Positions 6,154-30,215 are shown, counted from the stretch's first letter. The stretch: DNA of 64,000 nt from Penicillus capitatus (GCA_965649825.1 OZ287694.1:1859197-1923196), one strand, 5' to 3'. Notes: a model not told the origin generated them from the letters alone. Program-made: numbers and translations.

Positions 6154-8627
6154 ATGATGCAGCTGCGTGACGGAGTGCACGGTCGGTTCCAAAAGACAGT
6201 GATAATGACTTCGCGAACGCATTTCCATCTTTTAAGTATCATTCGACATTCCTTTTTCGCAACCACTTTGCGATGGGTTCAGTATTTTCGAGAACGGATG
6301 AAAACGCTGTCAGGGAGAGAGACGCCAACGACTTCGTCAACCTGGCTCTCGCTTCGATGGTTGAGATGCAACCTCCACGAAACGTTGTTGAACCGCCGCT
6401 GGAATGGAAGTCGGAAGACGTAAACCGGTGAGCAGCAGCCCTTGCACGGTTCGACCTGTCACGGCGGGTTTGTCTGACGAACAGGCTCATCGCTGAGCAC
6501 GGAATGGATTTTGCCTATGCCATGGACGAAAACTTTCACCCTGTTTTCTGGGATGCCATTAAGAAAGGTCAATACGACTGTGCAAACATGCTGCTTCATT
6601 ACCCAAGGTCCGAAGGATGCGAAGAGACATTTCGAAGACGTGGTGGTGATCTGCTGTTGTGGGCAATCGAGAACGATACATACGAGAGTGTCAGCTTCAT
6701 TCTGGAAAAACTCTTGGAGAAACACGTTACTGTCGGCGAAACCCAAAAGCTCCTATCAACACATCTGTGCACCATTGGCGAACGACGTCCCGAAATGCTG
6801 GCGGATCTCCTCAAGAACGACAAGTTCACCATCGAATACGCCAGATTTCGAGTACCGAAGGCTGTTTTTGACATCAACAGCAAGATTCCAAAAACCATGA
6901 TCACAAGGACAATACCGGCATCGTTGAAATGGGAAGTGATCGACGGCGAACGGGGAAAGGGTTTATGGATCAAGCACTGGGAAGAAGAGGGTCACTCAAT
7001 CGACAGCACCTCAGATGCGCAAACCTCAGTGATTGCAAAGATCTTCTTCATTGACTGTCCAGTGCATCTACTCCGCAACGACAATACTATGGGGCAGCAC
7101 CTCTGCGAATACCTCAACAATCTAAGCATGCCAGTGGAAGCTTTTGAATCTGAAACATTGAAGAAGTTTATTGACCACTGGTTTCAAGTTTTTCGCCCTC
7201 TCTATCAAGTCCTCCGCATCCAGGATATCGTCGCCACTTTGATCTTTACAATCTTCTCCCTTACGTTTGGACCTTCAAATGAGATCGGAAAGTTCTATTC
7301 CCTGACTTGGCCCTACATGTTATCTGTTTCCGCCTCGCTGCGTGCTGTTGGAGCTTATCATCTCGGTTCTTGTCGAAGGTCAGCAACCACTCGCCTGCTT
7401 GTTCTATCAGCTAATGTCTGAGATGAATGGGTGTAGGTTCATCCTCTGTTTGATTGAATGGACGCTGTATTATCTGCTTGTTTTTAGCAGCATCAGAGTT
7501 CATCACTACAAATACTGCGCCTTTTTGATATCTCTTATCTGCATCCTTCAATGGATCTCGGTATTTACCACATCGACCTGTGTCTCCCACTGAATCTGTT
7601 TGTGCACCCTAGATGTTTTTCTCGTGTCGGCCTTTTAAACGAATTGGGACGTTTATTTCGATGGTGAATTCAGTCATATCAGACTCCTGGCGTTTTCTGC
7701 TGTTAGTGACTCTGTTCATCGTCGGGTATTCGTCAGCATTCGTGGCGATCTTTAAGAATGGGTCTATGGGAGACGACGGAGAAAACTTCAACTCTTTTCC
7801 ACGTGCCATTGAAACCCTTTTCTACGCCTGTATTGGGAACTTCGAAGTGGAGGTACGACGTCCTTATTAACTTCTACTATGTCCGTGATGTTGGATCCGA
7901 TATGGTGATGCAGATGTTTCGTTCATTAAACAGCTTTCTTGCGTTTTGGGCCACTTTCCTGTTTGCTTCATTCATCTACCTTCTACCGATCGTACTGATC
8001 AGTGTGTTGATCGCCATTGTGCAAGATGTTTACGACAGAGTTCGGTCAAAAGAGAAAGCGGAACTGCGAAAACTCCGACTCCAGATAATTGCCAGATTTC
8101 AGTCTGCGAATGTTTTTGACACAGGAACATGGTAAGCCATAAAAGCATCATCGGAATCTGAGCTCACCGTTAATGTTTGATGGCACAGCAGCAATCCTAT
8201 CAAGTGGTTTTTTAGCTTTTGGTTCCGGGGTTGTTATCGATGCCTTCGACCATGGCAACGCGCAAGAAGACCTAGTGAAGTCATTGCAAATGAATTGAAG
8301 GGTGTCTACTTCCATTTTCTGATTCCTGAGATCAATGTACTGGAATCGCATAAAGTTGAATGGAAGGGAAAACTGGTGGCAATGGAAAGAACCATCAAGT
8401 CTGAAGGTCAGAAAGTCGAGAGAAGTTTGAAGGAGAAACTCGAACTGGCAGACAAGAAGATGGATGAATTGACAGCCCAATGTTCGAAGCTTGATAAGGA
8501 AACAACAGAAAGCAGATTAGAGGAGGAAAAATGGAGGTGTCACGTGAAGGAGAGAATGGACAGATTGGAGTCTGCCATGGACCGAATGCTTCAAAAACTG
8601 GATGCGAATGGTTTATCTTCCGGTTGA
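6154..8627 (+). CDS. TRP-like cation channel A (ankyrin-like repeats + 6 TM + pore loop + coiled coil); 5' end uncertain
   Basis: Inferred GT-AG introns 6428-6484, 7379-7436, 7561-7612, 7853-7913, 8132-8188 join ORFs 6504, 7342, 7613, 7758 and 8295. Ankyrin-like PVFWDAIKKGQYDCANMLL; pore segment FNSFPRAIETLFYACIGNFE; S6 LISVLIAIVQDVYDRV; C-terminal coiled coil. Confidence 0.75.
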
Positions 8628-14205: not shown

Positions 14206-17200
14206 ATGCAGTCCGAAGCTTTGGTCGAAGAAACGACGGCTGGTGGACCGTCCGCATCGGGCGATGTCGTTCGACCCGGCAAGAGCGACTCGCACGTCAA
14301 AGAACTTGACAACCCGAAGCTCCTGCGCACAGTCGCCAAAAAATACGGCGTAGAGAGCACGAAGTTACTGGTGGCGGCGTATAACGCAACGACGGTTAAG
14401 GATGAGCGTGGAGTTTTGCTTCATTGGCTCCGCAGATACGACGAATGGAAAGACGACTGCCTCAAACCGAAACACGTGCTTAGATATGCAGAACTAGCCA
14501 AAGTCGCCCACGTCTCCGAACAAGATGCCACGGTTCTGAGAAACCTGGTCTATAACTTCGGTTCCCTGATCCGTCCTAACGAATTTCTTGACGAGGACGT
14601 GGCAAAGGCTATGCTCAGTGCGCTCACATGGGTTGAATCTAGCGTCTATGATGACACCTCTCGATTGGCTGATCTGGGGTTAGACCTCTTGCTCAGCCTG
14701 TCCTCCAGACCCAGACTCACAAGACAAAACTTTCTTAAATACGAAGCAAACTTTCTCTGCATCCATCAAGTCTTTTTTCTCTTGCAAACCATCGGTCGTG
14801 GTCACTTGCTTGAGGAAGAGAAGAAAAGGCTTCGTAGAATTGTGGCACAGAAAAAGGAAGAGATGGAGTTATCCATTCTATATTACCCGGTGTCCTTTCA
14901 CTTTGAGTCAATTCAGCAAGCTGTCGAGCGCTTAGAAATCCAAGACACCCCATCAAGTCTCAGAAAAGCGAAAAGATATGCTGCATCTGGACTCTATGGC
15001 ACGATGCATGTCTTCCACTTGCTCAGACAACTGACCGGCGGCGATGTCGATCCTACATCAATAGAATATGCATACAGAAGAGGTCGAGCGGCACTTGCCA
15101 ACGCGGGAGTGTCAGAGAGGGAGTGGTATGATATACTCCAGATTCTAACGGCGGCCAGAATCCGCGCGCTTAAAGAAGAGAGAAAATGCGAACTTGTTGT
15201 ACTAGCGTACGACGCGGCGATGGAAGGGCAACGCAAAACCACTAGGGAAAAAGAGCAAAAAGCCTTAAGATATGGCATCCTCCAAGAAATGAGGCTTTTG
15301 GCAAGTGATAAGGACTTTTGTCAAGATGGCCGCAAGAAAGCAATGGCGAAGCTGGTCGAATTAACGACAAGTGCAGTAATCTCCGAGAGCTGGATCCATG
15401 ATGCAGACATCCTTGTTGCGATTTTAGACGCACTGCACGTAATCCACTCGATAGGCGAACAAAATGAAAATATAGGCGATGCTCTCCGAAGCATACAACG
15501 ATCATGCGACGAACGTACGAAAGGGACGTTAAAAGTTTGGCTCGATGGCAATACCATAGAAGAGAAGCTTCAACACCAGGAACATGCGGATAACGAGTAT
15601 GAAGATCCGTTCGACAAGATAGGTGCATCCGTTGGATACTTGCATCCGTCTACGATTCGTTCTAATATCGAAGAGCTCAAGAGAACGTACCTGCACGACA
15701 ACTTTGCTACAGTGAGCGCCATTGCTATTGTTTCGCCAAGACATGAAAGTTGTGTCCGTGTTGAAGGTGCCTTCCTTGTTTGCATCTGAAGTCCGTGGGC
15801 ACGTGAAGCATATGGAGCATCATGTTGTCGCGTACGAAGAAATTGTCGAAAAAAGGAGTATTGAAAGAAAAGAAAAACAACGTAAAGGAGACGGGGATGG
15901 AACGGAGGCAGAGAGCTCCACGATGCAGAAAAGAGATGACCCAAAAGAATACCGCGAGCAAAAGAGAAAGGTCACAACCCCCATTTCAATAGAAGACTTG
16001 TTCAAACCGAGATCGTTAAAAGCGGGGGTCGGCAAGAGCGATATCCGAAAAGTGCTTCTATATGGAAATCCCGGTTCGGGGAAGACTTGCCTCAGCAAAG
16101 CCATTGCTTACAGATGGGCATTGGGAAAAACGTTGCAGGAGTTTAAAGCCATCTACGTGGTCCCTGTAAGACGTCTAAATGTCGCTAAAGCCAAAGGGGC
16201 ACGAGGAGAAGGGCTTACGGAAGTGATCGCACACATGTGTTTTGAGCAAAAGGAAAGCGATACTGAATTTGAAGACTTGAAGACTCAAGTTAACGACGAT
16301 TTCGATATGTCTAGCACATTGCTAGTTTTTGACGGATTGGACGAGGCCGATGACGACACAAGAGAACTCCTTTCTAAGGTCGAGAAGGATGAATGCAGAC
16401 TTCTGATACTTACACGACCATACAACCTGCAAGGGATACGAACCAGAGTAGATTTCGAGTTCGAGTGCTTGGGATTCAATGACCAACAACTCAGAAACTA
16501 CATAAACAAAGAACTGCAGCAAGATGGAGCTTCGAGACTCATCCATTCTTTGCAAGAAAATCGGGGTATGTGGGAAGCCGCACACACTCCGGTGACGGCG
16601 TACATTCTCTGCACTTTGTCGAAAGAACGTGGAACTTCTATTGAGAATCGAGGGAAAAGGACGAGCATGTTTCAGATCTATGTCGACATGACAGATTTTG
16701 TATGGAAGAGGTTCAAAGAAAAGGCCGACGCCAGAACGGCGGACAAGAGTGTCGTTTTCGAAGATCTGGAGAAGATCGCTTTCGAAGCTCTTAAGAAAGG
16801 ACAAATACTCATCGAAGAGAGTATAGTTGAGCATTATACAACATCCACAAACACGACGGAAATCTTTAGGAAAAGCGGATTCCTCCTACTCGTTTTGGAG
16901 GGAAAACAATATCAGTTTCCACATCTCACCTTTCAAGAGTATTTCGCCGGAGAATACATTGCAAGAAACTTAATACAAAAAGGATCGGAGGAAGAGACGA
17001 AGGTACTCGATTTTATTCAAGAAGAGAAGTATAATGAAAAGCATGCTTTGACGCTATCCTTCGCAATGCACGCATTCGCGAGAAAACGGAGCAAACATGA
17101 GTTGAAAGAGATGCTTTCGATTGTCGATCAACAACCCGTTGAGGTTCTCGGAATTCAACACTTTTTCTTGAGAATGCGAGTCCTCGAAGCAATATTGGAA

Positions 17201-19855
17201 GAGGCGGAAGCTGCCGATTTGAAGACTCTCGAGAGAGACGAACAAGCAATCGAGATCGCCGAAAGTGCCCGCCGACTTCTAAAAGGAACGATTGACAACA
17301 TTCTAGTCTGCGAAATTGTAGTCGAGGCATTCGACAAATGCTTTCGCGTTTTGGAACACTTTCCTATAATACTCAATGACGCCATTGATGGGACGAAGAC
17401 ACTATTAGCAAGTTCAAGATACTTAACATGGAACGAAAGAGCCAGAGTTGATGCTATGCTCAAGCTAGCAAGGCATTCTCCGAAGCATATTGGTGACATT
17501 GGATCGTTCTTACGACTAAATGCCAAAGTCAAAGATCGGCAACGGAACACCATTGGCTCGTTCCTGCAACGGAACACCATTGGCTCGTTCCTGCAACGGA
17601 ACACCATTGGCTCGTTCCTGCAACGGAACACCATTGGCTCGTTCCTGCAACGGAACACCATTGGCTCGTTCCTGCAACGGAACACCATTGGCTCGTTCCT
17701 GCAACGGAACACCATTGGCTCGTTCCTGCAACGGAACACCATTGGCTCGTTCCTGCAACGGAACACCATTGGATCGTTCCTGCAACGGAACACCATTGGA
17801 TCGTTCCTGCAACGGAACACCATTGGATCGTTCCTGCAACGGAACACCATTGGATCGTTCCTGCAACGGAACACCATTGGCTCGTTCCTGCAACGGAACA
17901 CCATTGGCTCGTTCCTGCAACGGAACACCATTGGCTCGTTCCTGCAACGGAACACCATTGGATCGTTCCTGCAACGGAACACCAAAATCAAAGAGCGGCA
18001 CAGCAAAGAAGATGGCACAGCAAGGTTGCTAGATGTTGTAAGGAAGATACCGCAGATCGCGGATAGCCTGCTACCGATGCTTCAAGATATGTGCACCGAA
18101 GAAGACAGTAATGTGCGTAGTAGTGCGATGGAGGCCATCGGCAGCATCGCTAAGGCGGCACCGCACATCTCCAGCGATTTGCTACCGATGCTTCAAGAAG
18201 GGTTCACCGACGAAGACAGTAATGTGCGCATGAGTGCGATGGAGGCCATCGGCAGCATCGCTAAGGCGGCAGCGCACATCTCCAGCGATTTGCTACCAAT
18301 GATTCAAGAAGGCTTCACCGACGAAGCCACTAACGTGCGCATGAGTGCGATGGAGGCCATCGGCAGCATCGCTGAGTCGGCGCCGCACATCTCAGGCCAT
18401 TTGCTAACGATGCTTCAAAAAGGATACGACGAGAATGCCTCTGACGTGCGCGTGAGTGCCATGTTTGCGATTTGCCGCATTGCCAAGGCGGCACCGCAGA
18501 TCGCTGATAGCCTGCTACCGATGCTTCAAAAAGAGTGCATCAACGGAGACTTTAACGTACGCATAAGTGCGATGGAGGCCGTCGGCAGCATCGCTATGGC
18601 AGCGCCGCAGCTCGCGAGCTACTTGCTGCCAGAGCTCCAGAAAGGGTGTGACGACCCGGACTTTGACGTGCGCATGAGTACAATGTCAGCAATCGGCAGA
18701 ATCGCTATGGCGGCACCGCAGCTCGCGAGCAACTTGCTGCCAGAGCTCCAGAAAGGGTGTGACGACCCGGACTTCCACGTGCGACGGAGAGCGATGTTGG
18801 CCATTCGCCGAATCGTTAAGGCGGCTCCGCAGCTCGCAGGCAACGTGCTGCCGAACCTTCCAAAAGGGTGTAGCGACAAAGTCTTTGACGTGCGTTGGAG
18901 AGCAATGCAGGCTATCGGCAGCATCGCTGAGGCGGCGCCACACTTCGGGGGCTACCTAATAGCGATGCTTCAGAAAGGGTGCAGCGACAAAGCTTCCGTC
19001 GTGCGCAAGAGTGCGATGCCGGCCATCAGTGACGTCGCCAAAGCGGCGCCGCAGCTGGCGGTCGGTTTGCTGTCGATGCTTCAGAAGGGGTGTATCGACA
19101 AAGCCTCTGTCGTGCGAGAAAACGCGATATTGGCTATCGGTGACATCGCTTTGGCCGCGCCGCAGCTCGTAGCCGACGTGCTTCCGGTGCTTCAGAAAGG
19201 GTGCATCAACGACCCGGCCTCCGTAGTGCGCAAGAATGCTATATTGGCTGTCGGCAGCATCGCTGAGGTGGCGCCACATCTTGGGGGCTACCTGTTGGCA
19301 GTGCTTCAGGAAGGGTGTGATGACAAAGACTTTGGCGTGCGTCAGAGGGCGATGTCGGCCATCCGCCACATTGTTGAGTCGGGGCCGCACCTTGCCGGCG
19401 TCGTGTTGCCGGTGTTCCAGAAAGGATGCAGTGATGAAGACGTTCGCGTGCGCGAGAATGCAATGGAGGCTATCAGCAGTATCGCTGAGGCGGCGCCGCA
19501 CCTCGCAGGCGACGTGCTGCTAGTACTTCAAAAAGGGTGCAACGACGAAGATTTCGGCGTACACTCGGCCGCCAAGAAGACACTAAACAGTATCAACGTT
19601 GATAAGTTTGTTTTTTCGACCATCTTCTTTACTCCTACGTATGAAGAGTGCTTTCTGTTACTTCTTATGAAAAATGCATTTACACTCGACTCTCCTTTCG
19701 GTTATGAAAAAGTTTCCCTCATTTTACACACGACTTCTTCCAAACAAATTGGTCGGTGGAACAAGAAGAATCTTGATGGATTTTTGTGGAGGTTAAGAAA
19801 ACAGGCTGATGAGCGCTTTTCTGGGTTGTCAAGCTATCTTAGAACAAAATACTAG
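14206..19855 (+). CDS. NLR-like STAND ATPase 2: orphan N-terminal domain + NACHT + 27-nt repeat insert + 14 HEAT repeats; join(14206..15711,15767..19855)
   Basis: ATG 14206 aligns with the start of paralog 1; 55-nt GT-AG intron 15712-15766; Walker A GNPGSGKT at 16064; Walker B LLVFDGLDE; frame open to the TAG at 19855. Confidence 0.88.
17540..17983 (+). repeat. In-frame minisatellite: 16.4 x 27 nt encoding (NTIGSFLQR)n
   Basis: Unit caacggaacaccattgg(c/a)tcgttcctg. The synonymous C/A variant runs 8C-4A-3C-1A. Absent from paralog 1. Confidence 0.97.
18047..19600 (+). repeat. Coding tandem array: 14 x ~111 nt HEAT-like units
   Basis: Fourteen units counted in the translation; units 2/3 and 6/7 are near-identical neighbours. 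Confidence 0.9.
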
Positions 19856-22860: not shown

Positions 22861-23907
22861 TTAGGTCATCGGGTACATATCGGACGCCTTCTCATCCACT
22901 ACTTCATCGTCTGCTTCTGAAGTGTACTTGAGATGACCGGAGAAGATTGTAATCGGACCATACTTCCCAACAGCTTCCTGGACTTTAAAATGCGAGCCCG
23001 GATAGACGTCGACCTTTACTCTTTCCGAACGACTCTGATGAAACGCGCTTCGTTCCACCGTCGACCAATCGAAATGAATACTGCTGCTGATCTTGAGCTG
23101 AAAAATTCTTCCGAAACCTGCTGACGCACTTACAGACGTAGAGAAAGACCCCGCTCTCGTCGACTCTCTTTCCAGATTCGTGCCTCTTGCGTATTCCAAT
23201 TCGACTCCTATTATCGATTTGCCAGCCTTGTTGTCAAACTCCGTGATGGTGACCCACTTATCAGACGCTTCCCATTCTTTGTCGCCTTCTTTCCACCCGA
23301 CAAATCGATTGCGGCCTCGAGTCTTTGATTTCCAGCTACCGCAGTAGAGCACACTGTTGGTCCAAAGGAAAATAAAATGGTACGGCGCCCTGGCTCTGCG
23401 AATCATGAGATTGTCGTTATTCTCGTCGAGATAAAGATGGAAACGTTCCCAGGTGTGGATCTCTCCCCTTCCTTCGACATCGCCTTCGTCTTCGCAACAC
23501 AACCATTGCTGAGTTTTGGTGTTTTTGATAGCAAAGACTCCATCGTCGACTATATAAAGTTCAAATCGATGCGCCTCTTCACAATTCTCTCCGTCGGCGC
23601 GGAACCTTCCGCTTCCCGAACGCGCATCGTGACGCACAAACTTCAAGTTTGTGCCGAGGAGGGCGATGTACCGCGTTCCGACACTGACGCCGTCATTTCC
23701 CGGCCCCACTTGAAAACGCCACAGCTGGTCGGTGTTCGTCACTCGGACGGTAGAAGGATTCTTAACGCTTCGCGTCGGACGCCATAGCTGGTTGGGGTTC
23801 GTCGCTTGGACGGTAGAAGTATTCTTGACACTTCTTGCAGAACGGACCTCGGTTGCGACTGCCGTTTCAGTAAACAGCAGCAACAATGCGACAGATGTGA
23901 AGGACAT
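22861..23907 (-). CDS. Secreted protein: signal peptide + fascin-like beta-trefoil + Ser/Thr-rich beta domain (putative aerolysin/ETX-MTX2-type pore-forming module)
   Basis: Intronless ORF. MSFTSVALLLLFTETAVA resembles a signal peptide. Fascin-like units IALLGTNLKFV..., FAIKNTKTQQWLCCE...WERF. The C-terminus has alternating S/T beta strands (SFSTSVSASAGFG...ISSSIHFDWST). The pore-former call is inference from the sequence pattern. Confidence 0.65.
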   Translation of the reverse strand: MSFTSVALLLLFTETAVATEVRSARSVKNTSTVQATNPNQLWRPTRSVKNPSTVRVTNTDQLWRFQVGPGNDGVSVGTRYIALLGTNLKFVRHDARSGSGRFRADGENCEEAHRFELYIVDDGVFAIKNTKTQQWLCCEDEGDVEGRGEIHTWERFHLYLDENNDNLMIRRARAPYHFIFLWTNSVLYCGSWKSKTRGRNRFVGWKEGDKEWEASDKWVTITEFDNKAGKSIIGVELEYARGTNLERESTRAGSFSTSVSASAGFGRIFQLKISSSIHFDWSTVERSAFHQSRSERVKVDVYPGSHFKVQEAVGKYGPITIFSGHLKYTSEADDEVVDEKASDMYPMT

Positions 23908-24414
23908 CTCCGAAGCGGGCGGCAGGAAATCAAGGGCCTGCACAAGACAGTCACATCGCCATGGAAATCTTGGCGACAAACAGTGACAGTTGAATCAGGA
24001 TTCATGCCTTCTGTCGTGCGAAAGACACGGCGAGTCGAACTAACGTGCGTAGTGGAAACGAAACAAAACGGAAACACGCAAAGAATTGATTAAATTACAC
24101 AGCCCGGCCGTTTCCCGGGATGCTATCGCCCGTCACTTTAAACAATGAACGAACGCGCAAGGCGCGTCTGAGCCTCTTACTTCTTCGGTGTGTCGAAACT
24201 CGTATGGCGTAGAACTTCCTTCGTCTTCCGTCCTCGCGTTGGTATGGAGATCGTCGCAGAGTCTTCTCACGTCTCCTCGAGTCCATCCCGTCCACTGTAG
24301 CTGGTTCACGCGAAAAAAAACAAAAAAGGCAAAAGGCAAAAGGCAAAAGGTAGAGAAAGATGATGAATGGATGCAGCAACCGACGCAGTCTTCTGCGTCA
24401 GCAGCTTTAGGGCT

Positions 24415-24477
24415 AGGGTGACTGCTCAGTCGAGTGACCGAACAGTTTCGACGGCGCCACCCGTCTCATCAGACCCC
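24415..24477 (-). ncRNA. Type I hammerhead ribozyme (minus strand)
   Basis: Minus strand reads GGGGU-CUGAUGA-GACGG(GUGGCG)CCGUC-GAA-ACUGUUC(12 nt)GAGCAGU-C/ACCCU: complete core, 5-bp stem II, 7-bp stem III, 5-bp stem I. Predicted GUC cleavage between 24420 and 24419. Confidence 0.9.
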
Positions 24478-24489
24478 TTAAGAGTTTTT

Positions 24490-24568
24490 GCCGATTTAGC
24501 GCTATCCAGTCCCGCCACGAGGAGGCACGGCTCGACGATGCGTTGGCAAACGCACCGCCGTTGGGACC
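24490..24568 (-). ncRNA. HDV-like self-cleaving ribozyme, minimal P4 (minus strand)
   Basis: P1 GGUCCC/GGGACU with a G.U first pair; J1/2 10-bp hairpin GCGGUGCGUU/AACGCAUCGU; P2 GCCGU/AUCGGC (one bulged U); P3 GCC/GGC; L3 UCCUCGU; J1/4 GG for P1.1; J4/2 CUAA with candidate catalytic C at 24499. P4 is reduced to ~6 nt. Confidence 0.72.
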
Positions 24569-24571
24569 ACA

Positions 24572-24904
24572 TTTTTGGGTGGTAATCACGAAATGAAATG
24601 CCATTCTTTTTGGGTGGTAATCACGAAATGAAATGCCATTCTTTTTGGGTGGTAATCACGAAATGAAATGCCATTCTTTTGGGTGGTAATCACGAAATGA
24701 AATGCCATTCTTTTGGGTGGTAATCACGAAATGAAATGCCATTCTTTTGGGTGGTAATCACGAAATGAAATGCCATTCTTTTGGGTGGTAATCACGAAAT
24801 GAAATGCCATTCTTTTTGGGTGGTAATCACGAAATGAAATGCCATTCTTTTTGGGTGGTAATCACGAAATGAAATGCCATTCTTTTTGGGTGGTAATCAC
24901 GAAA
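24572..24904. repeat. Minisatellite, 9 full + 1 partial copies of a 34-35-nt unit
   Basis: Unit t(4-5)gggtggtaatcacgaaatgaaatgccattc; only the T-run length varies; no spacers. Confidence 0.97.
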
Positions 24905-24921
24905 GTGCCTTGGGTAATCAC

Positions 24922-25497
24922 GAGGATGTCCTTCCTTCCGGGATTCCTCAACCAGGTCGAAGGGAAGGCCCGCCTACGGGAGGCGGCCTCCCACTTCGCC
25001 TTCGGGACTAACGGGTGGGCCCGACGCCGTAGAAGCCGTTCAACAGTCCGCGCCACAACCGTCGCACGATTGCCGCCATCGACGGCAGCGTCTCATGCGC
25101 TGTTTGAAAGGTTCTTCGACGGACAACCGAACGACGAGTTCGACGTAGTGGGACCGGAGCTGCGCAACTGTGGGGGAGTATCTCCCGGAAAGAAGGGCCA
25201 TCCGAGGATGTCCCCCCGATCCGAGATTCCTCAACCAGGTCAAAGCAAAGGCCGCCTACAGGAGACGACCCTTACCCCGCCTTCGGGACTAACGGGTGGG
25301 CCCGACGCCGCAGAAGCCGCTCAACGGCCCCCGCCACAACCGCCGCACGATTGCCGCCGTTCTCGGCAGCGTCTCATGCGCTGTGTGAAGGTCTTCGATA
25401 CTGCAAAACTTCAATATGACGGACAATCGAACGACGCGTTCGACGCATCCGGACTGGAACTGCGCAACTACGGGGGAGTATCTCACGGAAAGAAAGA
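24922..25497. repeat. Diverged tandem duplication, 282-nt period, GC- and hairpin-rich
   Basis: gaggatgtcc starts at 24922 and 25204; shared cgccttcgggactaacgggtgggcccgacgcc, gcagcgtctcatgcgctg and gggggagtatctc.cggaaagaa. Confidence 0.9.
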
Positions 25498-25808
25498 CGA
25501 AAAATGGTGCGCGTCATCACTTATATACCCCTTCAGATGATGTGACAGCGTCACATCGTTTTGTCGCGCAATCAGCCAATCACGACGCGAGTTCAGAGCA
25601 CCAACCGTCGGAAGAAGAAGCAGGGAGGAAGGCGTCGCGTCGGCCGATAGCCAATCACGTTGCAGTATCGGAATATTCGATCTGTCACATCAGATTCTCG
25701 TCGATCCAACCAATCAGCGCGCACCTTTCGATTATCCGACCGTAACGCGACAGGGTCACATCACCATTCAGGTATATAAGGCCCACCACGACGCGCATTT
25801 CGTCTTTT
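25493..25808. promoter_or_regulatory. Bidirectional Pol II-type promoter
   Basis: TATATAA on minus (25521-25527) and on plus (25773-25779). Each is followed in its own direction by gacgcgca(cc)attt(t)tcgtcttt. Three CCAATCA boxes (25576, 25651, 25710) and three gtcacatc motifs (25550, 25684, 25755) lie between them. Confidence 0.65.
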
Positions 25809-26244
25809 GTCGTTAGGGCGGTTCTACTGGTGTGTTCTCGCTTCCGGGTTTCGGCTCGGAACACAGAACGCCAAAAACCGGGCCAGTGCTGCCACGCTAT
25901 AAGCCGCCAACCCAGCCCGTCGGTGTTGCGAGGCGCCCCTTCGGGAGGTGCTGCTGACCATCACCTTCCCGCCGCGGTTGGCGCGTGCAAAGGTCGTTAG
26001 ACGCTGGATTCGGAGTGTCTAAGGCGTGTTGCGAGGCATCACTCAGGTGGCGCTGATGACCTCCACACCTGGCTCCGAACTTTGCGCTCCGCCGCACGCT
26101 TAAGACATACGGCTCCACTGCGCTAATGCCACGCCGCCTTCGGGTGACGCGTCACTGGTTCAGTGGGGAGGGTGGGCTTGGGGTTATCCTAGCCAATCCG
26201 GATCTTTCCGGATCGCGTCGAGGGTTTTGGTGCTTCGACGTGAA
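25790..26244 (+). ncRNA. Putative structured non-coding RNA upstream of the plus-strand hammerheads
   Basis: Nested helices: ggcggttct/agaacgcc (25817-25872), tccgggt-TTCG-gctcgga (25843-25860), cgccaacc/ggttggcg, ttagacgct/agtgtctaa (25997-26022), atccgga/tccggat (26196-26213). Several UUCG tetraloops; no convincing ORF. Confidence 0.45.
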
Positions 26245-26290
26245 GGGGTCTGACGAGACGGGTGGCTCCGTCGAAACCCTTAGGTCTTCT
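26245..26290 (+). ncRNA. Hammerhead ribozyme core with poor stem I (degenerate or partner-dependent)
   Basis: GGGGU-CUGACGA-GACGG(GUGGCU)CCGUC-GAA-ACC(CUUA)GGU-C. Core and stem II are intact, but the sequence after GUC (UUCUG) pairs weakly with GGGGU. Confidence 0.55.
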
Positions 26291-26459
26291 GTTGACGTGT
26301 CGTCCGTACCGCGCGCGCTCGAATTACGCGTTCAATTCTCGCTCTCCGTGTTGGATCTCGGCCGATGTCCAGCGCACGGGTAGATCTGCCGACATCGTCC
26401 GCGGGTCTTTTTCCTCCGCCGATTCGATGTCGCGTTCGTTCGCGCTGCGGCGCGGGAAA

Positions 26460-26526
26460 GGGGTCTGATGAGACGGATGGCGCCGTCGAAACCGCAGAGT
26501 GCTTCGTTGCATTCGGCGGTCACCCC
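26460..26526 (+). ncRNA. Type I hammerhead ribozyme (plus strand)
   Basis: GGGGU-CUGAUGA-GACGG(AUGGCG)CCGUC-GAA-ACCGC...GCGGU-C/ACCCC. Stem III is extended by gagtgc/gcattc and stem I is a perfect 5 bp. Predicted cleavage after C26521. Confidence 0.93.
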
Positions 26527-29291
26527 AGCCAGTCGTTTTTTTCTTTCTGTCTCTTTTTCGCCTATCTATATCTATGTTTCTGCCTACGTGCGTTAACACT
26601 AACTGACCTTTACAGCCGATGGCAAGGCGATCTGCATGTATGTATGTATGTACACATGCTCCCCGCTCGGCTTTAAAGAAGAATTCTTCGCGCTGTGTCT
26701 CTCACTCGTTCGTCCTCCTGCCGTTAAGTGATCTGACCCTAGTTTGTTCAACGTGATGGTAGACTTGGAGGCGACGCATTTTTTTGGTATTGGAAAGTGG
26801 ACCTTTGTACCTACCTAGACCAGAGTGGCAGAGCAGCAGTCCTCTGGATTTCTGATGAGTGGTTCTTAACAGCACATCAACCTTGTCGATCATCAGGACG
26901 CCGACGTTGTGCGACACCGCCGTTGCAACGTATAGCGAGCCCGTGAAGCTTTCGAGTGACCTCATTCTCACAACGTGAACCGGCGATTCTCAAGCTTGCC
27001 GTTGCAACGGCGGACTCCATCGCCCGACCGCTTCATTCGCTCTTGCATCAAGAGAATATCACTCCTCAGCGCTGTCGCCGTCTCCACGTCAAACTACGTT
27101 TTAAACGGAGCGTTCCGTTCTCCTTCAGGTGGGTGGGTGGGTGTCCTGCAAACAGACGTTGGCTATACACAGTGAGTGACCAGAAGCCCGAGCAAATGCA
27201 AGACGGCCCTTGGCCTGTCAAATCAGAAGCGCGCTGTTCTCTCTTTGCTTTCCAGTCGTCACACCACAACAGACAGAACCGGTGGCCATGCTGAGACTGT
27301 CCTGTTTTAACATCCCATCTTCTAGGCGAGACGTTGCGGACCGGAATCGAACTTCTAGGTGCTCTCCCCTGAGCACTGCTGCATTAGGAGTGAAGATCAC
27401 CGGGAGTGTCGCGATATAAACCTATGACATGCATTACCGTTTTGGAGTCCCCGATTCAAGGGACATTGATCGCATCAGAACGCGCCGAAGGACTGAAGGA
27501 AGGTGTTTGTCGACGAACGCATAACACAGCTTTCTGGTGCAAGATCCGACGAGATCGCAGCTGCATGGGTTTATGTCCCACGAGATTCGAAAGGCCGACA
27601 CACTCGGTGTGAAGCTAGCCGCCGCCAATCGAGAACAACGAATTCAAGAACTTCGATTCCTCACTTCCAACGAAACCTCTTTCTTCCCGCCGCCGACCCT
27701 CTTCTGAAGTGTTCCACACTTGGTCGTCGCTCACCGGATTGTTTATTCATATGCCGGCGCTTTCAGATGGAGCAAGATCTGTCACAGCTTCGTGCGACTG
27801 TTGTCCTCGTTCCCGCAGATCATCCCAGTGCGCGTCGTCGCCAGTCATGGTCGCATGGATGCGCCAAACGTGCGAAGTCTACAAGAAGACAAATGAATGA
27901 ATGACTCGGCACGCCGTCGGAATACACGACGTTTAAGTAAGTAACAGGCGAGAACAGTTCATTATCTACGAGAAAAGCTACGCGGAGCGAGCGACTAGTG
28001 CTTTCCCAACTCCGTGCATCGATCGCCCTCAGCAACGTCGTCGCGCCAATGTCCTTTCAGATCGTCCACGTAGCGCCGGTGACACACTAGACGACAGCAA
28101 CTCACCATGTCCGACGAGCCAGACAGAGACTATAAAAATTTACTCCTCTGATGACGATACGAGCAGCTAGCTGGATTCAGACAAGTGAGATTAGAAAACT
28201 CCGTCGCCGCAAAAACACAGACAGATGTTGTGTCAACGTTTCCGATTAGGCAAGGAAGCTTTTGGATGCGCTCGTATCGTGGAAGTAGCAGTTGTGTGTG
28301 CCCTGACGACGATAAGACAGACAGACAGACTTTGGTAGATGCGACCTGAACTTATGCCAAGTGTGGCAGCTTCTGGTTGCGTAAGATTGTCTGTTTCTCG
28401 TGACTGAAGCGTCAGTCAGGTCGTAACAAGGAAGCCTGTCGCGCGGAGTATGAGGCGGTTTTTGATGGAATACAAAGGTTACACAATTGACAACTTTTCA
28501 ATGAACAAAACGGAGCGAAAAGGTTACTTACAATCAACTTGTACAGCAAACAGAAATAAAGTAACTCGTAAGCAAAGAAGCAGAACAATTCTAATCTAAT
28601 CTTCTTCTTCCCCTTTTACTTAACCCTTCAGGTGCGACAGCTCGGACCGTCGTCTAAGCCGCCGTGCGTGGTCGGTCTTGAAGTGAGAGGTGAACGGGAG
28701 AGCCGGTGCGTCATAGGTGTTCTCTGAAAGACTTATGCCAGAATGGATAGAGACATTCACGAAGAGGTCACAGTACTCGGCCAGTCTTCCGAACCCCCCC
28801 AAATGCGTTCGGTAGTTTCTCAAATCTCTCTCCGCGCCTGCTCGAAGAGAACGAACAGCTCTCTAGCCGGTGAGGCAGAGGGAGAGGGGGTTCCACTGTT
28901 AGTTATGACTCTCCCATCCAGTGGGTTTGAAGAGTGGGAGAGAGGACCACTGGCCGAAGAGGAGTCCAGTGGGATCATCGGATAAACGCTGCTGCGTTCT
29001 TTTGCACATTTGCTGTGATTGTTCTGTCGTAAACCGCTCGTTCGGTGACGACTGTTGCCATTGTAGGCTGCTTTCGCATGTTTACACTTTGACAGTTTTC
29101 ACGCTGGTAGATCTGTTCCGTCACCTCCGTTAATGCCCGTCACATTCTCCCCGACACGTGTATGTACGGATAAAAAACCGATCGATAAACGCGCGCGCAA
29201 AGCACGAAGCTATGAAGAACATAGAGTACTATTACATACCATTGTTTCGGTTCGACTCATAAGGATCGAACTCAACTTGACAGTGAAACAA

Positions 29292-30110
29292 CCAGAGCAG
29301 TGAATGCGAATGGAGACGGCCGGTTCGACTTATGGCTGTCGAACCCGTCTTGCCAGAGAAACAGCCAGAGCAGTGAATGCGAATGAAGACAGCCGGTTCG
29401 ACTTATGGCTGTCGAACCCATCTTGCCAGAGAAACAGCCAGGGTCAGCCCCGGCGGAAAAACAGCCGGTTCGACTTATAGAGAGGTCGAACTCTTGTTGC
29501 TCAGACGATGCGTGTGCTTGCCAGAAAAACAGGCCAGGGTCAGCCCCGGCGGAAAAACAGCCGGTTCGACTTATAGAGAGGTCGAACTCTTGTTGCTCAG
29601 ACGATGCGTGTGCTTGCCAGAAAAACATGCCAGGGTCAGCCCCGGCGGAAAAACAGCCGGTTCGACTTATAGAGAGGTCGAACTCTTGTTGCTCAGACGA
29701 TGCGTGTGCTTGCCAGAAAAACAGGCCAGGGTCAGCCCCGGCGGAAAAACAGCCGGTTCGACTTATAGAGAGGTCGAACTCTTGTTGCTCAGACGATGCG
29801 TGTGCTTGCCAGAAAAACAGGCCAGGGTCAGCCCCGGCGGAAAAACAGCCGGTTCGACTTATAGAGAGGTCGAACTCTTGTTGCTCAGACGATGCGTGTG
29901 CTTGCCAGAAAAACATGCCAGGGTCAGCCCCGGCGGAAAAACAGCCGGTTCGACTTATAGAGAGGTCGAACTCTTGTTGCTCAGACGATGCGTGTGCTTG
30001 CCAGAAAAACATGCCAGGGTCAGCCCCGGCGGAAAAACAGCCGGTTCGACTTATAGAGAGGTCGAACTCTTGTTGCTCAGACGATGCGTGTGCTTGCCAG
30101 AAAAACAGGC
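29292..30110. repeat. Compound minisatellite: 2 x 73 nt then 7 x 96 nt, each unit with a GTTCGAC..GTCGAAC hairpin
   Basis: 73-nt period (29292, 29365); 96-nt period from 29438 to 30110; the units differ essentially only at aacaGgcc/aacaTgcc. Confidence 0.96.
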
Positions 30111-30215
30111 CAAGGACAGGACAGAGGACACCGCGCCCATGCAACCAAGGACAGGACAGAGGACACCGCGCCCATGCAACCAAGGACAGGACAGAGGACA
30201 CCGCGCCCATGCAAC
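30111..30215. repeat. 3 x 35-nt tandem repeat
   Basis: caaggacaggacagaggacaccgcgcccatgcaac starts at 30111, 30146 and 30181. Confidence 0.95.

Follow-up and report, generated by a model that had tools for sequence, protein, structure and literature searches.

The window, that is, the whole 64-kb stretch (64,000 nucleotides) of Penicillus capitatus DNA analyzed here, was found to contain two head-to-head non-coding units that have a CCAAT-box region in common. We regard this locus as belonging to a multi-copy family of non-coding transcription units, in which pairs of ribozymes would give the RNAs poly(A)-independent 3' ends and perhaps contribute to transcription termination, and assign a probability of roughly 0.55 to this reading. 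Each arm carries one ribozyme predicted to cut at its own 5' edge and one type I hammerhead predicted to cut at its own 3' edge. The features of the cassette exceed chance; the hammerhead core pattern CTGANGAGNC..GNCGAAA occurs three times in the 64 kb, every time within this region, against 0.02 occurrences expected. The same pattern had zero matches in the viral (IMG/VR) and prokaryote-genome collections and one match in the JGI metagenome collection. All of the sequence features listed in the original prediction were found where it had placed them, and the RNA ends it proposed (24569, 24420, and 26521) are exactly the cleavage sites assigned below.

At least 13 related units were identified on 10 other contigs of two assemblies. 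They were retrieved via spurious ORFs spanning the arms (L003-L010 from ENA assembly ERZ25074695 and L011-L012 from ERZ26696514). The cassette recurs as a whole, together with the two promoters that lie ahead of the start sites, in the form of paralogs, tandem pairs (one in L008 and one in L010), and a segmental duplicate, and the flanks are unrelated among L004, L007, L008, and L010. Single units, each with its own promoter of the same type, were found in L004b, L009, L011, and L012. The recurrence of the cassette features in the related units excludes chance juxtaposition. Other copies could have exposed the locus as fragments of a Penelope-like element or a retrozyme joined by chance, but the outcome was the opposite, as the juxtaposition is kept in other copies. 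The two arms have nothing in common beyond promoter, start region, and ribozyme. Conservation is 93-100% in the ribozyme cores, which are kept in the two assemblies, compared with 73-89% for the neighboring sequence. Differences in conservation between one arm and the other are confounded by gene conversion. Decay is seen in a few copies (L007, L006, and the hammerhead of L004b). The absence of a credible ORF inside the cassette, as anticipated, was borne out by variable columns that spread evenly over the three codon positions (17/53, 18/53, and 20/52) and by indels whose lengths are not multiples of three. By this pattern of variation, the ORFs inside the cassette are spurious and the units are non-coding.

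The promoter region of ~290 bp comprises two outward promoters of the form GTCACATCA-N9-GGTATATAAG and three CCAAT boxes. In the left promoter (25498-25546, minus strand), which is kept in all left arms, GTCACATCA and GGTATATAAG lie at 25546-25538 and 25529-25520, respectively, and transcription would start near 25508-25505, between GCGCACCA and UUUUUCGUCUUU, as judged from the distance to the TATA box and an Inr-like CA. The right promoter (25755-25797, plus strand) has GTCACATCA at 25755-25763 and GGTATATAAG at 25771-25780, with a putative start near 25797, between GCGCA and UUUCGUCUUU. Most paralogs have TATTTAAG instead in the right promoter, the layout of which is identical in the second assembly (L011 and L012). 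Both promoters place GTCACATCA 9 nt before GGTATATAAG and continue as ..GCGCA(CC)ATTT(TT)CGTCTTT. The shared upstream region (25547-25754) bears CCAATCA at 25576-25582, 25651-25657, and 25710-25716 as well as one more GTCACATCA at 25684-25692; it is 87-93% identical among paralogs, which vary in the number of ATATTCCATCTGTCACATCAGA repeats. GTCACATCA occurs seven times in the window (0.64 expected), of which three are in the promoter region and the other four stand alone with no TATA box. As for the single symmetric promoter originally proposed, the outward promoters with matching motifs are present, but the symmetry is not essential, since single units exist.

The left RNA, encoded on the minus strand with a predicted length of ~937 nt, comprises two structured units and a 35-nt repeat array. 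Units A (24905-25204) and A' (25205-25497) lie in tandem (24905-25497, minus strand), are ~290 nt each and ~80% alike, and are 93-100% identical among paralogs. Their consensus fold amounts to -103.5 kcal/mol on the minus strand versus -62.5 kcal/mol on the plus strand and contains many G.U pairs, with one-sided changes that pair on the minus strand only; the z values of the fold are -3.3 for A and -1.9 for A'. The far greater stability on the minus strand agrees with the orientation of the TATA box and that of both ribozymes. The array (24572-24904, minus strand) consists of 9.6 copies of a unit (TRF: period 35, 99%) that reads GAAUGGCAUUUCAUUUCGUGAUUACCACCCAAAAA as RNA, and both the copy number and the unit differ among paralogs.

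The first ribozyme candidate of the left arm is an HDV-like module (24490-24568, minus strand) with a predicted cut at 24569/24568. P1 (GGUCCC/GGGACU, 6 bp) has a G.U pair at its base, a 12-bp helix (P1.2) lies inside J1/2, and P2 (GCCG/CGGC), P3 (GCC/GGC), and P1.1 (CC/GG) follow, with no P4. L3 reads UCCUCGU, presumably one base different from L3 of the HDV ribozyme, and J4/2 is CUAA with C24499 as the candidate catalytic residue. The HDV-like ribozymes fold into a nested double pseudoknot (P1, P1.1, P2, and P3, with or without P4) and cleave at the first nucleotide of P1, and J1/2 helices are known activators of the large versions (PMC4908430). At the level of sequence features, G1.U is invariant, L3 offers two C residues for P1.1 (UUCUCGU in L004b keeps a wobble), and CUAA precedes P2', so that the G.U, L3, and J4/2-C hallmarks appear to be in place. 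Near-invariance begins exactly at G1 while the upstream columns 1-20 are unconserved, which matches a ribozyme with no upstream sequence requirement. The five helices can form in 11 copies with 99.3% of the cells paired, and four pairs show compensatory changes. These changes are confined to P1 and P1.2, and the pseudoknot helices P2, P3, and P1.1 never vary among copies. A nested three-way junction fits the module equally well; it likewise contains P1 along with the J1/2 helix and represents the minimum-energy fold. In L006, 3 nt of L3 are missing. Even L004b, a diverged copy, retains the 3' tail CUAARUCGGCA, which has no other explanation. Altogether, the sequences are compatible with an HDV-like fold.

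Two type I hammerheads occupy the outer positions. In HH-L (24411-24479, minus strand), helix I pairs GGGGU (24477-24473) with ACCCU (24419-24415), the core is CUGAUGA...GAAA, helix III is of 10 bp, and the predicted cut follows GUC at 24420/24419, with AGCC next. R2 (26460-26530, plus strand) has the same core, GGGGU (26460-26464) paired with ACCCC (26522-26526) as helix I, a helix III of 11 bp, and a predicted cut after GUC at 26521/26522, again with AGCC next. The three-way junction is the minimum-energy fold of both HH-L (z -2.7) and R2 (z -2.3), and the two are conserved at 94-100% in 10 copies and at 87-99% with the second assembly included, respectively. HH-L and R2 each possess CUGANGA, GAAA, and an NUH triplet with A15.1-U16.1, and as modeled they share the type I topology, in which helices II and III are loop-closed and helix I is open. 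All of the 14 distinct type I sequences retain the core and the NUH site together with four or more of the five helix I pairs. The full junction is the minimum-energy fold in nine of the 14, and a tenth (R2 of L004) has helix I closed and a different inner fold.

Close to the limits of the conserved block, the outer hammerheads make up an inverted repeat (35 nt at 97% identity; 35-73 nt in extent). This arrangement may be read as the remains of mobile elements, either inverted 5'-truncated fragments of a Penelope-like element or a retrozyme, or terminal inverted repeats of a DNA transposon with hammerhead-like sequence, such that the ribozymes would have no role at present. Penelope-like elements carry hammerheads and insert as inverted pairs, homology breaks off sharply at the left boundary in six paralogs (24331-24336 in L004, L007, L008a/b, and L010a/b), and the few decaying copies suit such a reading. 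Nevertheless, what HH-L and R2 have in common is limited to the catalytic core plus helices I and II. Their helix III sequences are unrelated and yet both form hairpins of 10-11 bp, indicating selection on structure rather than on a DNA repeat. The conserved block continues outward past the hammerheads, and the unrelated arms and the elevated conservation of the cores in two assemblies also speak against mobile remains. According to precomputed Pfam annotation, none of the related loci that were fetched has an RT, GIY-YIG, or transposase ORF within 5-6 kb. The cassette has no RT or GIY-YIG ORF either, and the window contains a single RT, of the Ty3/gypsy type, 23 kb away. We consider this reading highly improbable.

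A search with Rfam covariance models, which had been proposed as a check, was negative, with zero matches at the gathering score for any ribozyme and, for the right arm, none even at E<=10. Sub-threshold matches were obtained for HH-L only, namely 17.8 bits to RAGATH-1-hammerhead (threshold 56.3) and 15.7 bits to Hammerhead_3 (threshold 48.5), with E ~0.8; the weak RAGATH-1-hammerhead alignment has the same layout as HH-L. The gathering score is a detection threshold and not a property of ribozymes, but the result is still a real negative.

In the right arm, the 5' RNA (25797-26185, plus strand; predicted length ~389 nt) is variable in its 5' part and conserved in its 3' part (26123-26185): identity is 73-96%, with large indels, over 25816-26122 and 86-96% over 26123-26286. 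The predicted 3' end of this RNA is formed by GGGGAGGGUGGGCUUGGGG (26165-26183), a G-tract that lies just upstream of the R1 site and is the only G-quadruplex motif in the window. Its G tracts are invariant in 14 copies, with changes in the loops only. Both of the hammerhead cores claimed for this arm are present, but the inner one (26250-26276) fits type III, not type I. When R1 (26180-26280, plus strand) was read as type I, helices I and III were 58 and 70% paired, respectively, and the N1.1-N2.1 pair failed in nine of 10 sequences. Re-read as type III, helix III is GGGGU (26180-26184)/ACCCU (26276-26280), helix I is AUCCU (26186-26190)/GGGGU (26245-26249) with two hairpins as a cap, and CUGACGA (26250-26256), helix II (26257-26272), and GAAA (26273-26276) make up the core. 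The predicted cut, at 26185/26186, follows GUU in the window copy; the site is GUC in most copies. Pairing of helices I and III is complete (100%) across 10 distinct sequences, and R1 is without covariation because both strands of these helices are invariant. RNAalifold recovered helix I and the cap. After GAAACCCU, the sequence is not conserved. By its sequence, R1 would have helices I and II closed, helix III open, and the site 5' of the core, as in type III hammerheads.

The body between R1 and R2 (26281-26459, plus strand) lies within the predicted 336-nt excised RNA (26186-26521), the length of which ranges from 293 to 357 nt among 11 copies, with 340 nt in the second assembly. The body contains islands conserved across assemblies and a partly covarying hairpin, and overall stability is not noteworthy (z -1.5). 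The excised RNA carries at its 5' end AUCCUAGCC, a sequence that resembles ACCCUAGCC found after the type I sites, and ligation would therefore rebuild helix I of R2. The conserved islands and this likeness would suit a circular RNA product no less than a simple spacer.

The locus may be a retrozyme-like generator of circular RNAs, in which the 336-nt (26186-26521) and 149-nt (24568-24420) RNAs would be the functional or selfish products and the upstream RNA a leader. Their 5'-OH and 2',3'-cyclic-phosphate ends, natural substrates for an RtcB-type ligase, would allow them to be circularized, and the RNAs may be copied back into DNA by an RT encoded elsewhere. Animal retrozymes have monomers of 170-400 nt and a GC content below 50% (PMC7229834); the excised RNA of the right arm falls into the former range, but GC here, at 54-60%, is above the latter. 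The islands and partial covariation of the body and the rebuilt helix I favor this possibility, as does L004b, in which the HDV-like module, a body of ~1.2 kb, and a hammerhead remnant look like the same frame of a 5' and a 3' ribozyme around a cargo. Against it, neither tandem monomer arrays nor solitary monomers were found in ~170 kb of related loci, where every hammerhead sits inside a promoter-bearing unit. Only 36-nt cores are repeated and the R1-R2 sequence is unique, at odds with the tandem 170-400-bp monomers of animal retrozymes, each of which has one type I hammerhead. Plant LTR retrozymes have direct LTRs with a type III hammerhead, a PBS, a PPT, and a 4-bp target-site duplication, but we found no direct terminal repeats beyond the hammerhead core, boundary duplication, or PBS/PPT. 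The ORF for RT and GIY-YIG endonuclease that Penelope-like elements carry between pseudo-LTRs is likewise absent from the cassette. In addition, the copies carry promoters and both divergent arms, which is impossible for a single RNA intermediate, and no target-site duplications or nearby RT were detected. R1-only units exist in the second assembly, the ligated 149-nt left product would not rebuild its hammerhead, and the excised RNA is neither unusually stable nor rod-like. We judge the retrozyme-like reading to be rather unlikely.

T runs are present after the ribozymes of both arms, as the original prediction had stated. On the left, a hairpin downstream of the hammerhead cut (24373-24408, minus strand) is found in every left-arm copy, with replacements of U.G by C-G pairs, and the T-rich tail (24305-24372, minus strand) consists of CCUUUUGCC repeats followed by T6 and T8. 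A run of four or more T occurs +65 to +76 past the cut in 10 of 10 copies. A match to mir-84 was rejected as spurious, being accounted for by the conserved hairpin. The left T-rich tail is complementary to GGCAAAA upstream of HH-L. On the right, a T7 run (26536-26542, plus strand) begins 15 nt past the R2 cut, with a run of four or more T at +12 to +19 in 11 of 11 copies, and paralog homology stops just beyond, at 26541-26560 in L004, L010b, and L007. The T runs could be distal partners of helix I rather than terminators.

In snRNA-type genes, a proximal element lies at a set distance from the TATA box, and a 3' box or a T-run terminator follows. The T runs at a fixed distance past every type I hammerhead and the constant 9 nt that separate the upstream element from the TATA box would suit such genes and raise the question of which polymerase transcribes the units. 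They may be RNA polymerase III genes with external, U6-like promoters, for which GTCACATCA would serve as the proximal sequence element, the T runs would terminate, and the ribozymes would trim. The newt hammerhead satellite transcripts, driven by an snRNA-type promoter, are a precedent. However, runs of T4-T7 also occur inside the arms upstream of R2 (T5 at 26406-26410 in the window and T6-T7 in L004 and L010b), the CCAAT boxes and Inr-like start are typical of polymerase II, and transcripts of 0.7-1.1 kb would be long for polymerase III. Furthermore, L012 has a GTCACATCA-TATA pair at 6725-6750, away from the hammerhead-bearing unit. We regard polymerase III as improbable, and RNA polymerase II is most likely the enzyme for these units, because the pair also occurs apart from them.

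For the favored reading, a family of non-coding genes with ribozyme-made 3' ends, we propose the following course of events. Each unit would be transcribed from its own promoter, composed of GTCACATCA, the TATA box 9 nt downstream, and the Inr-like start. The first cut, by the HDV-like fold at 24569/24568 on the left or the type III hammerhead at 26185/26186 on the right, would free an upstream RNA of ~937 or ~389 nt with a 2',3'-cyclic-phosphate 3' end that is nearly scar-free and not polyadenylated; a first ribozyme that cuts at its own 5' edge would leave a clean end on the upstream RNA. The second cut, by the type I hammerhead 149 nt (left, 24420/24419) or 336 nt (right, 26521/26522) further on, would free a small ribozyme-bearing RNA, and the polymerase would then carry an uncapped 5'-OH RNA into the conserved T-rich tract, promoting termination. 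The ribozyme that cuts at its 5' edge is the constant feature, since units with R1 but without R2 exist in the second assembly and the HDV-like module of L004b lies ~470 nt past the promoter. The left product, with its two ~290-nt units and 35-nt array, and the right product, with its G-quadruplex-type end, look like stable structured non-coding RNAs.

Of the two alternatives in the original prediction, a non-coding RNA locus with poly(A)-independent ends is favored by the promoter-bearing cassette copies, the single units, and the 5'-edge cutters, whereas a non-autonomous mobile element is disfavored by the lack of RT, Penelope-like ORF, tandem monomer array, PBS/PPT, and target-site duplication in the loci searched. 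More tentatively, and with somewhat less than even confidence, we suggest that cellular genes adopted ribozyme pairs in place of cleavage and polyadenylation, so that the right 3' end would be closed by a G-quadruplex cap and the hammerhead would serve termination and yield a circularizable RNA. RNA ends made by ribozymes without polyadenylation would be unusual in nature, and the locus, if this is true, would be the first natural one in which a hammerhead and an HDV-like ribozyme are combined in a single transcript to form RNA ends.

Among the known systems, retrozymes are non-coding elements (LTR in plants and non-LTR in animals), the RNA of which is cut out by two hammerheads and circularized. 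The cassette is alike in being non-coding, in using hammerheads of types I and III whose cores are canonical, and in that two ribozyme cuts would free an RNA of a few hundred nucleotides with 5'-OH and cyclic-phosphate ends, the right one (~340 nt) being in the animal size range. In contrast to retrozymes, it has no tandem monomers, LTRs, PBS, PPT, or target-site duplications, two ribozyme types per RNA (a type I hammerhead together with either a type III or an HDV-like ribozyme), an external TATA/CCAAT promoter in every copy, divergent pairing, and a GC content of 54-60%, and its copies spread as DNA blocks including the promoter. The second system is the HDV-like ribozymes at the 5' ends of non-LTR retrotransposon RNAs (R2, RTE, and L1Tc/NARTc). 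The left module resembles them in its compatibility with the double pseudoknot, the predicted cut at its own 5' edge, the G.U at the base of P1, the J1/2 helix, and the predicted removal of co-transcribed upstream RNA. On the other hand, nothing coding comes next (a hammerhead follows after 12 nt in the window), the conserved RNA is the one upstream of the cut, P4 is lacking, and P1 has 6 rather than 7 pairs. Penelope-like elements and Terminons, which carry hammerheads in their terminal repeats, share with the cassette genomic type I-style cores near the ends and a possible inverted orientation, and they are non-polyadenylated, as is predicted for the RNAs of the cassette. The cassette differs from them in having no RT or GIY-YIG ORF, in its arms, which are not truncated copies of one element, and in its helix III hairpins of 10-11 bp as opposed to their minimal dimer-dependent form. 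Finally, amphibian satellite 2 and Schistosoma Sm-alpha are transcribed, self-cleaving repeats that are non-coding and multi-copy like the cassette and, as proposed for the cassette, promoter-driven with type I hammerhead processing. Their monomers, however, are short, tandem or SINE-like, and contain a single hammerhead, and their promoter is internal or of the snRNA type. The original statement that the architecture matches no known element class is thus roughly right, with the qualification that retrozymes and the retroelements processed by HDV-like ribozymes come close in mechanism.

On reading the sequence of 24000-27000, the original prediction of a divergent non-coding cassette was borne out almost line by line. 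The TATA element GGTATATAAG lies at 25529-25520 on the minus strand, for the left arm, and at 25771-25780 on the plus strand, for the right arm. Each copy is preceded, 9 nt upstream, by GTCACATCA and followed, ~20 nt downstream, by GCGCA(CC)AUUU(UU)CGUCUUU, and three CCAATCA boxes and one extra GTCACATCA occupy the space between the two promoters. The window contains GTCACATCA seven times, where 0.64 occurrences are expected; three are at the cassette, and the other sites lack a TATA box. In L012, a related locus of a second assembly, a GTCACATCA-TATA pair also lies outside the unit that bears the hammerhead. Within the left arm are two repeats of ~290 nt and a 35-nt repeat present in 9.6 copies.

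The hammerhead core CTGANGAGNC...GNCGAAA matched three times in 64 kb, all in the cassette region, against 0.02 expected. Based on the core pattern, fold and conservation, we assigned HH-L of the left arm (24479-24411, minus strand) and R2, the outer hammerhead of the right arm (26460-26530, plus strand), to type I. Both retain the full core (CUGAUGA, GAAA and GUC), a 5-bp helix I in which GGGGU pairs with ACCCU or ACCCC, and an identical helix II, and their helices III are closed hairpins of 10-11 bp with mutually unrelated sequences. The minimum-energy fold of each is the hammerhead three-way junction. Being of type I, they should be cut near their own 3' edges, with predicted sites at 24420|24419 (HH-L) and 26521|26522 (R2), which coincide with the ends 24420 and 26521 proposed originally. 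No Rfam family reached the threshold in the window, in the region searched at E<=10, in ten related loci or in two short stretches, so the type I assignment rests on the descriptor, fold and conservation. In a short stretch, HH-L scored 17.8 bits against RAGATH-1-hammerhead, which has the same layout and a cut-off of 56.3. We regard the matches to mir-84, MIR4371, CssrB, Fluoride, Flavi_xrRNA and RcsR1, which fell on hairpins and repeats, as chance.

Relatives of the cassette were retrieved through two spurious ORFs crossing the arms, used as handles in a protein collection. The 233-aa ORF (24839-25540) led to three contigs, and the 85-aa ORF (26126-26383) to eight contigs with nine proteins; the contigs of L004 and L005 were among those already reached with the 233-aa ORF. 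The 233-aa ORF is antisense to the left RNA and was rejected as a gene; the 85-aa ORF is open in many copies but shows no bias at third codon positions, with indels of lengths other than multiples of three. The earlier statement that there is no credible ORF inside thus stands, as the ORFs show no codon-position bias and the indels break the frame. Altogether, the family comprises at least 13 units, including those in the window. In the assembly ERZ25074695, L003 and L006 show synteny with the window and L005 shares some flanking DNA, while L004, L007, L008 and L010 have flanks unrelated to it; L008 and L010 each carry two cassettes in tandem. Single units are found in L009, in L004 (a diverged unit, L004b), and in L011 and L012 of the second assembly (ERZ26696514), the last two being ~70-86% identical to the window in conserved parts. 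As the juxtaposition recurs in tandem and at loci with unrelated flanks, it is conserved rather than accidental. The basic module is the single unit, consisting of a promoter, an RNA, ribozymes and a T run, and two such modules are commonly arranged as a divergent pair.

The single units vary in their makeup. In L004b (L004 7675-9550, minus strand), a GTCACATCA/CCAAT/TATA-like promoter of its own precedes a leader of ~470 nt, an HDV-like module bearing compensatory changes, a body of ~1.2 kb that includes a block resembling window 25980-26040, and a hammerhead that is truncated within helix III. In both L011 and L012 (6150-6300 each), a ~40-nt tandem repeat, TACTTACTTACCCTACTACTGTCTGTCTTCGTT, replaces the body and R2 after units with R1 only. 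The uL13 gene on L004 is interrupted by an intron and at most 66% identical to any named protein, its nearest named relatives being those of green algae, plants and vertebrates. No PDB relative was found for an ESF1-like ORF. Outside these assemblies, the hammerhead core had no match in IMG/VR viral contigs or in prokaryote genomes, and a single one in JGI metagenomes (L002; contig Ga0099817_1511750, 351-441). The L002 match has the same helix II and a T-rich tract followed by a trypsin-like ORF; its helices I and III could not be completed in either topology.

The inner hammerhead of the right arm, R1, had been read as type I. In this topology, helix I is poor and helix III is not conserved, with helices I and III paired in only 58% and 70% of cells, against 100% across 10 distinct sequences when R1 is drawn as type III. 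An invariant GGGGUY|AUCCUAGCC lies ~60 nt upstream of the R1 core and resembles GGUC|ACCCUAGCC at the type I sites. In the type III model, helix III is formed by GGGGU (26180-26184) and the ACCCU after GAAA, and helix I by AUCCU (26186-26190) and the GGGGU before CUGACGA, capped by two hairpins. RNAalifold independently recovered helix I and its cap. Both strands of the helices are invariant, and therefore no covariation is seen. On this modelling, R1 is a type III hammerhead with a predicted cut at 26185|26186. In the decaying locus L007 (5061-5417), CUGA has changed to CCGA in the R1 core, and helix II of R2 carries a G.A mismatch.

The first module of the left arm (24568-24490, minus strand) is compatible with an HDV-like double pseudoknot in which P1 is GGUCCC/GGGACU, its basal pair being G.U, P2 GCCG/CGGC, P3 GCC/GGC, P1.1 CC/GG and J4/2 CUAA; P4 is absent, and J1/2 holds a 12-bp helix. 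L3 is UCCUCGU, which we take to be one base different from that of HDV itself. Among 11 copies, the 20 columns upstream of G1 are unconserved, and near-invariance begins exactly at G1. L004b bears a compensatory change from C-G to U-A in P1 and a different paired sequence in place of the distal J1/2 helix, and the 3' tail CUAAGUCGGCA is kept in this diverged copy. The kept tail favours the pseudoknot because no other model accounts for it. Activation of large HDV-like ribozymes by a stabilising helix in J1/2 has been documented (PMC4908430). Counting against the fold, P2, P3 and P1.1 do not vary among the copies, and the decaying L006 (2825-2936) lacks 3 nt of L3. A nested three-way junction is the minimum-energy fold of the module and fits equally well. 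A loose HDV-like descriptor was discarded as evidence in its own right, as it matches about once per 64 kb of shuffled sequence. We regard the module as likely an HDV-like ribozyme with a predicted cut at 24569|24568, the position (24569) already named in the original prediction. The tail CCUUUUGCC downstream of HH-L (24333-24350) shows complementarity to GGCAAAA(GG), which lies immediately upstream of HH-L (24485-24493) and overlaps with the P2' proposed for the HDV-like module; the pairing is kept in most paralogs, with A-U changed to U.G in L004a, and could represent an alternative conformer or a distal helix.

Combined, the predicted cuts would give both arms the same order of processing, in which the first ribozyme cuts at its own 5' edge and the later type I hammerhead at its own 3' edge. 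On the left arm (minus strand), a transcript from an inferred start at ~25505 would be cut at 24569|24568 to leave an upstream RNA of ~937 nt, and then at 24420|24419 to excise an RNA of 149 nt (24568-24420). On the right arm (plus strand), with an inferred start at ~25797, the cuts at 26185|26186 and 26521|26522 would yield an upstream RNA of ~389 nt and an excised RNA of 336 nt (26186-26521). The upstream RNAs would be freed almost without a ribozyme scar, and the excised RNAs would bear 5'-OH and cyclic-phosphate ends. The expression and catalysis of these RNAs are inferences from the sequence. A run of at least four T lies at +12 to +19 after every R2-type site (11/11 copies), and every HH-L is followed by a conserved hairpin and then by such a run at +65 to +76 (10/10). 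Homology among the paralogs stops just past the T tracts. The TATA element, the CCAAT boxes and the Inr-like start suggest that the units are transcribed by polymerase II. A U6-type polymerase III promoter would also suit the fixed spacing between GTCACATCA and TATA and the fixed positions of the T runs, but several arms contain T5-T7 runs ahead of R2. Alternatively, the T runs might base-pair with the A-rich stretch 5' of helix I.

The original prediction had offered two alternatives, a mobile ribozyme-processed element and a non-coding RNA locus with poly(A)-independent 3' ends. No ORF for an RT, endonuclease or transposase was found in the cassette or within 5-6 kb of it in the fetched related loci. 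Neither target-site duplications nor tandem monomers nor LTRs were found. Furthermore, every copy includes the promoter, which argues against mobility because an RNA intermediate beginning at the start site could not carry it. The original interpretation is partly supported, with the second alternative favoured over the first. The arms share only the promoter, start region and hammerhead, and an inverted duplication was rejected. snRNA, SRP, telomerase, SL RNA and other known small-RNA identities had no Rfam support, no one-and-a-half telomere-type repeat template was seen on reading the arms, and CCCUAGCCCUAAAG after HH-L is not conserved among the paralogs.

Which product matters was examined from both sides. 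The 5'-edge cutter is the constant element, as the second assembly has R1-only units and, in L004b, the HDV-like module comes ~470 nt downstream of that unit's own promoter; this points to the upstream RNAs. The left upstream RNA points the same way, being 93-100% conserved among the paralogs, with a consensus fold of -103.5 kcal/mol for the minus strand compared with -62.5 for the plus, and many G.U pairs and one-sided changes that keep pairing on the minus strand only; unit A, one of its two tandem ~290-nt structured units (24905-25204), folds with z = -3.3. The right upstream RNA would end in GGGGAGGGUGGGCUUGGGG; the 64-kb window has no G-quadruplex motif other than GGGGAGGGTGGGCTTGGGG (26165-26183), which immediately precedes the predicted R1 cut. 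Across 14 copies from two assemblies, its G tracts do not vary and every change falls in the loops, and this too points to the upstream RNAs; the last G tract is also a strand of R1 helix III. Pointing the other way, to the excised RNAs, the right-arm product keeps its length (293-357 nt) and has conserved islands across assemblies, and ligation at its 5' end would rebuild helix I of R2. A rod-like or viroid-like structure for the 336-nt RNA was unsupported (z -1.5). Gene conversion among the paralogs undercuts the case for the upstream RNAs by weakening arguments from unequal conservation. The syntenic L003 and L006 match the window at 96-100% identity over the flanks and left arm and at only 78-86%, with large indels, over the right promoter and leader (25751-26122), where the window resembles the paralogs L005 and L007 (89-96%) and not its own alleles. 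Such a mosaic is suggestive of gene conversion within the family. CCACNNCGCCTTCGGG, 16 nt long, occurs on the same strand at both 24991-25006 and 26129-26144. Through it, the left RNA would be complementary to the right RNA at the tip of a hairpin; the match may be chance.

The surrounding window carries two long uninterrupted ORFs on the plus strand (2187-5105 and 15722-19855), each encoding a NACHT NTPase followed by HEAT repeats and lying behind a 529-547-aa ORF that has no Pfam match; they look like a paralogous gene pair of NLR-like architecture. An intact 1476-aa Ty3/gypsy ORF (gag-protease-RT-RNase H-integrase; 49114-53544, minus strand) lies 23 kb from the cassette, and no other reverse transcriptase is encoded in the window. 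The NACHT-HEAT ORFs and the Ty3/gypsy element mark the window as eukaryotic. The ENA contig ctg329650 shares the NACHT ORF at 2187-5105 and ends at the left edge of the cassette (~24398), implying that assemblies seem to break at this repeat family. A 63-nt tandem repeat (23716-23834) lies inside an ORF at 22861-23979, a ~96-nt tandem array downstream of the cassette (~29400-30200) is common to L003 and L005, and L005 553-4478 holds three 341-aa ORFs in tandem that lack a Pfam match.

Genomic hammerhead and HDV-like ribozymes are mostly tied to retroelements or have no known role, and the purpose of cellular self-cleaving ribozymes is a long-standing question. The units described here have their own promoters and an architecture conserved across paralogs and two assemblies, and the ribozymes in this family appear to serve host-type non-coding genes. 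In the literature, we found no description of a promoter-bearing non-coding unit whose end comprises an HDV-like ribozyme or type III hammerhead and then one of type I. The occurrence of two ribozyme classes in the same position argues for selection on the act of cutting, not on a particular sequence. If confirmed, the family would show that ribozymes naturally provide for termination and for 3' ends formed without poly(A), and would include hammerhead variants missed by current Rfam models. Closest in mechanism are retrozymes, in which an RNA is cut out by two hammerheads, and, also close, the HDV-like ribozymes trimming transcripts of non-LTR retrotransposons; the cassette fails the defining tests of both, as well as those of Penelope-like elements. 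In synthetic biology, HDV and hammerhead ribozymes are used for end-trimming, for which the cassette, if confirmed, would be a natural precedent.
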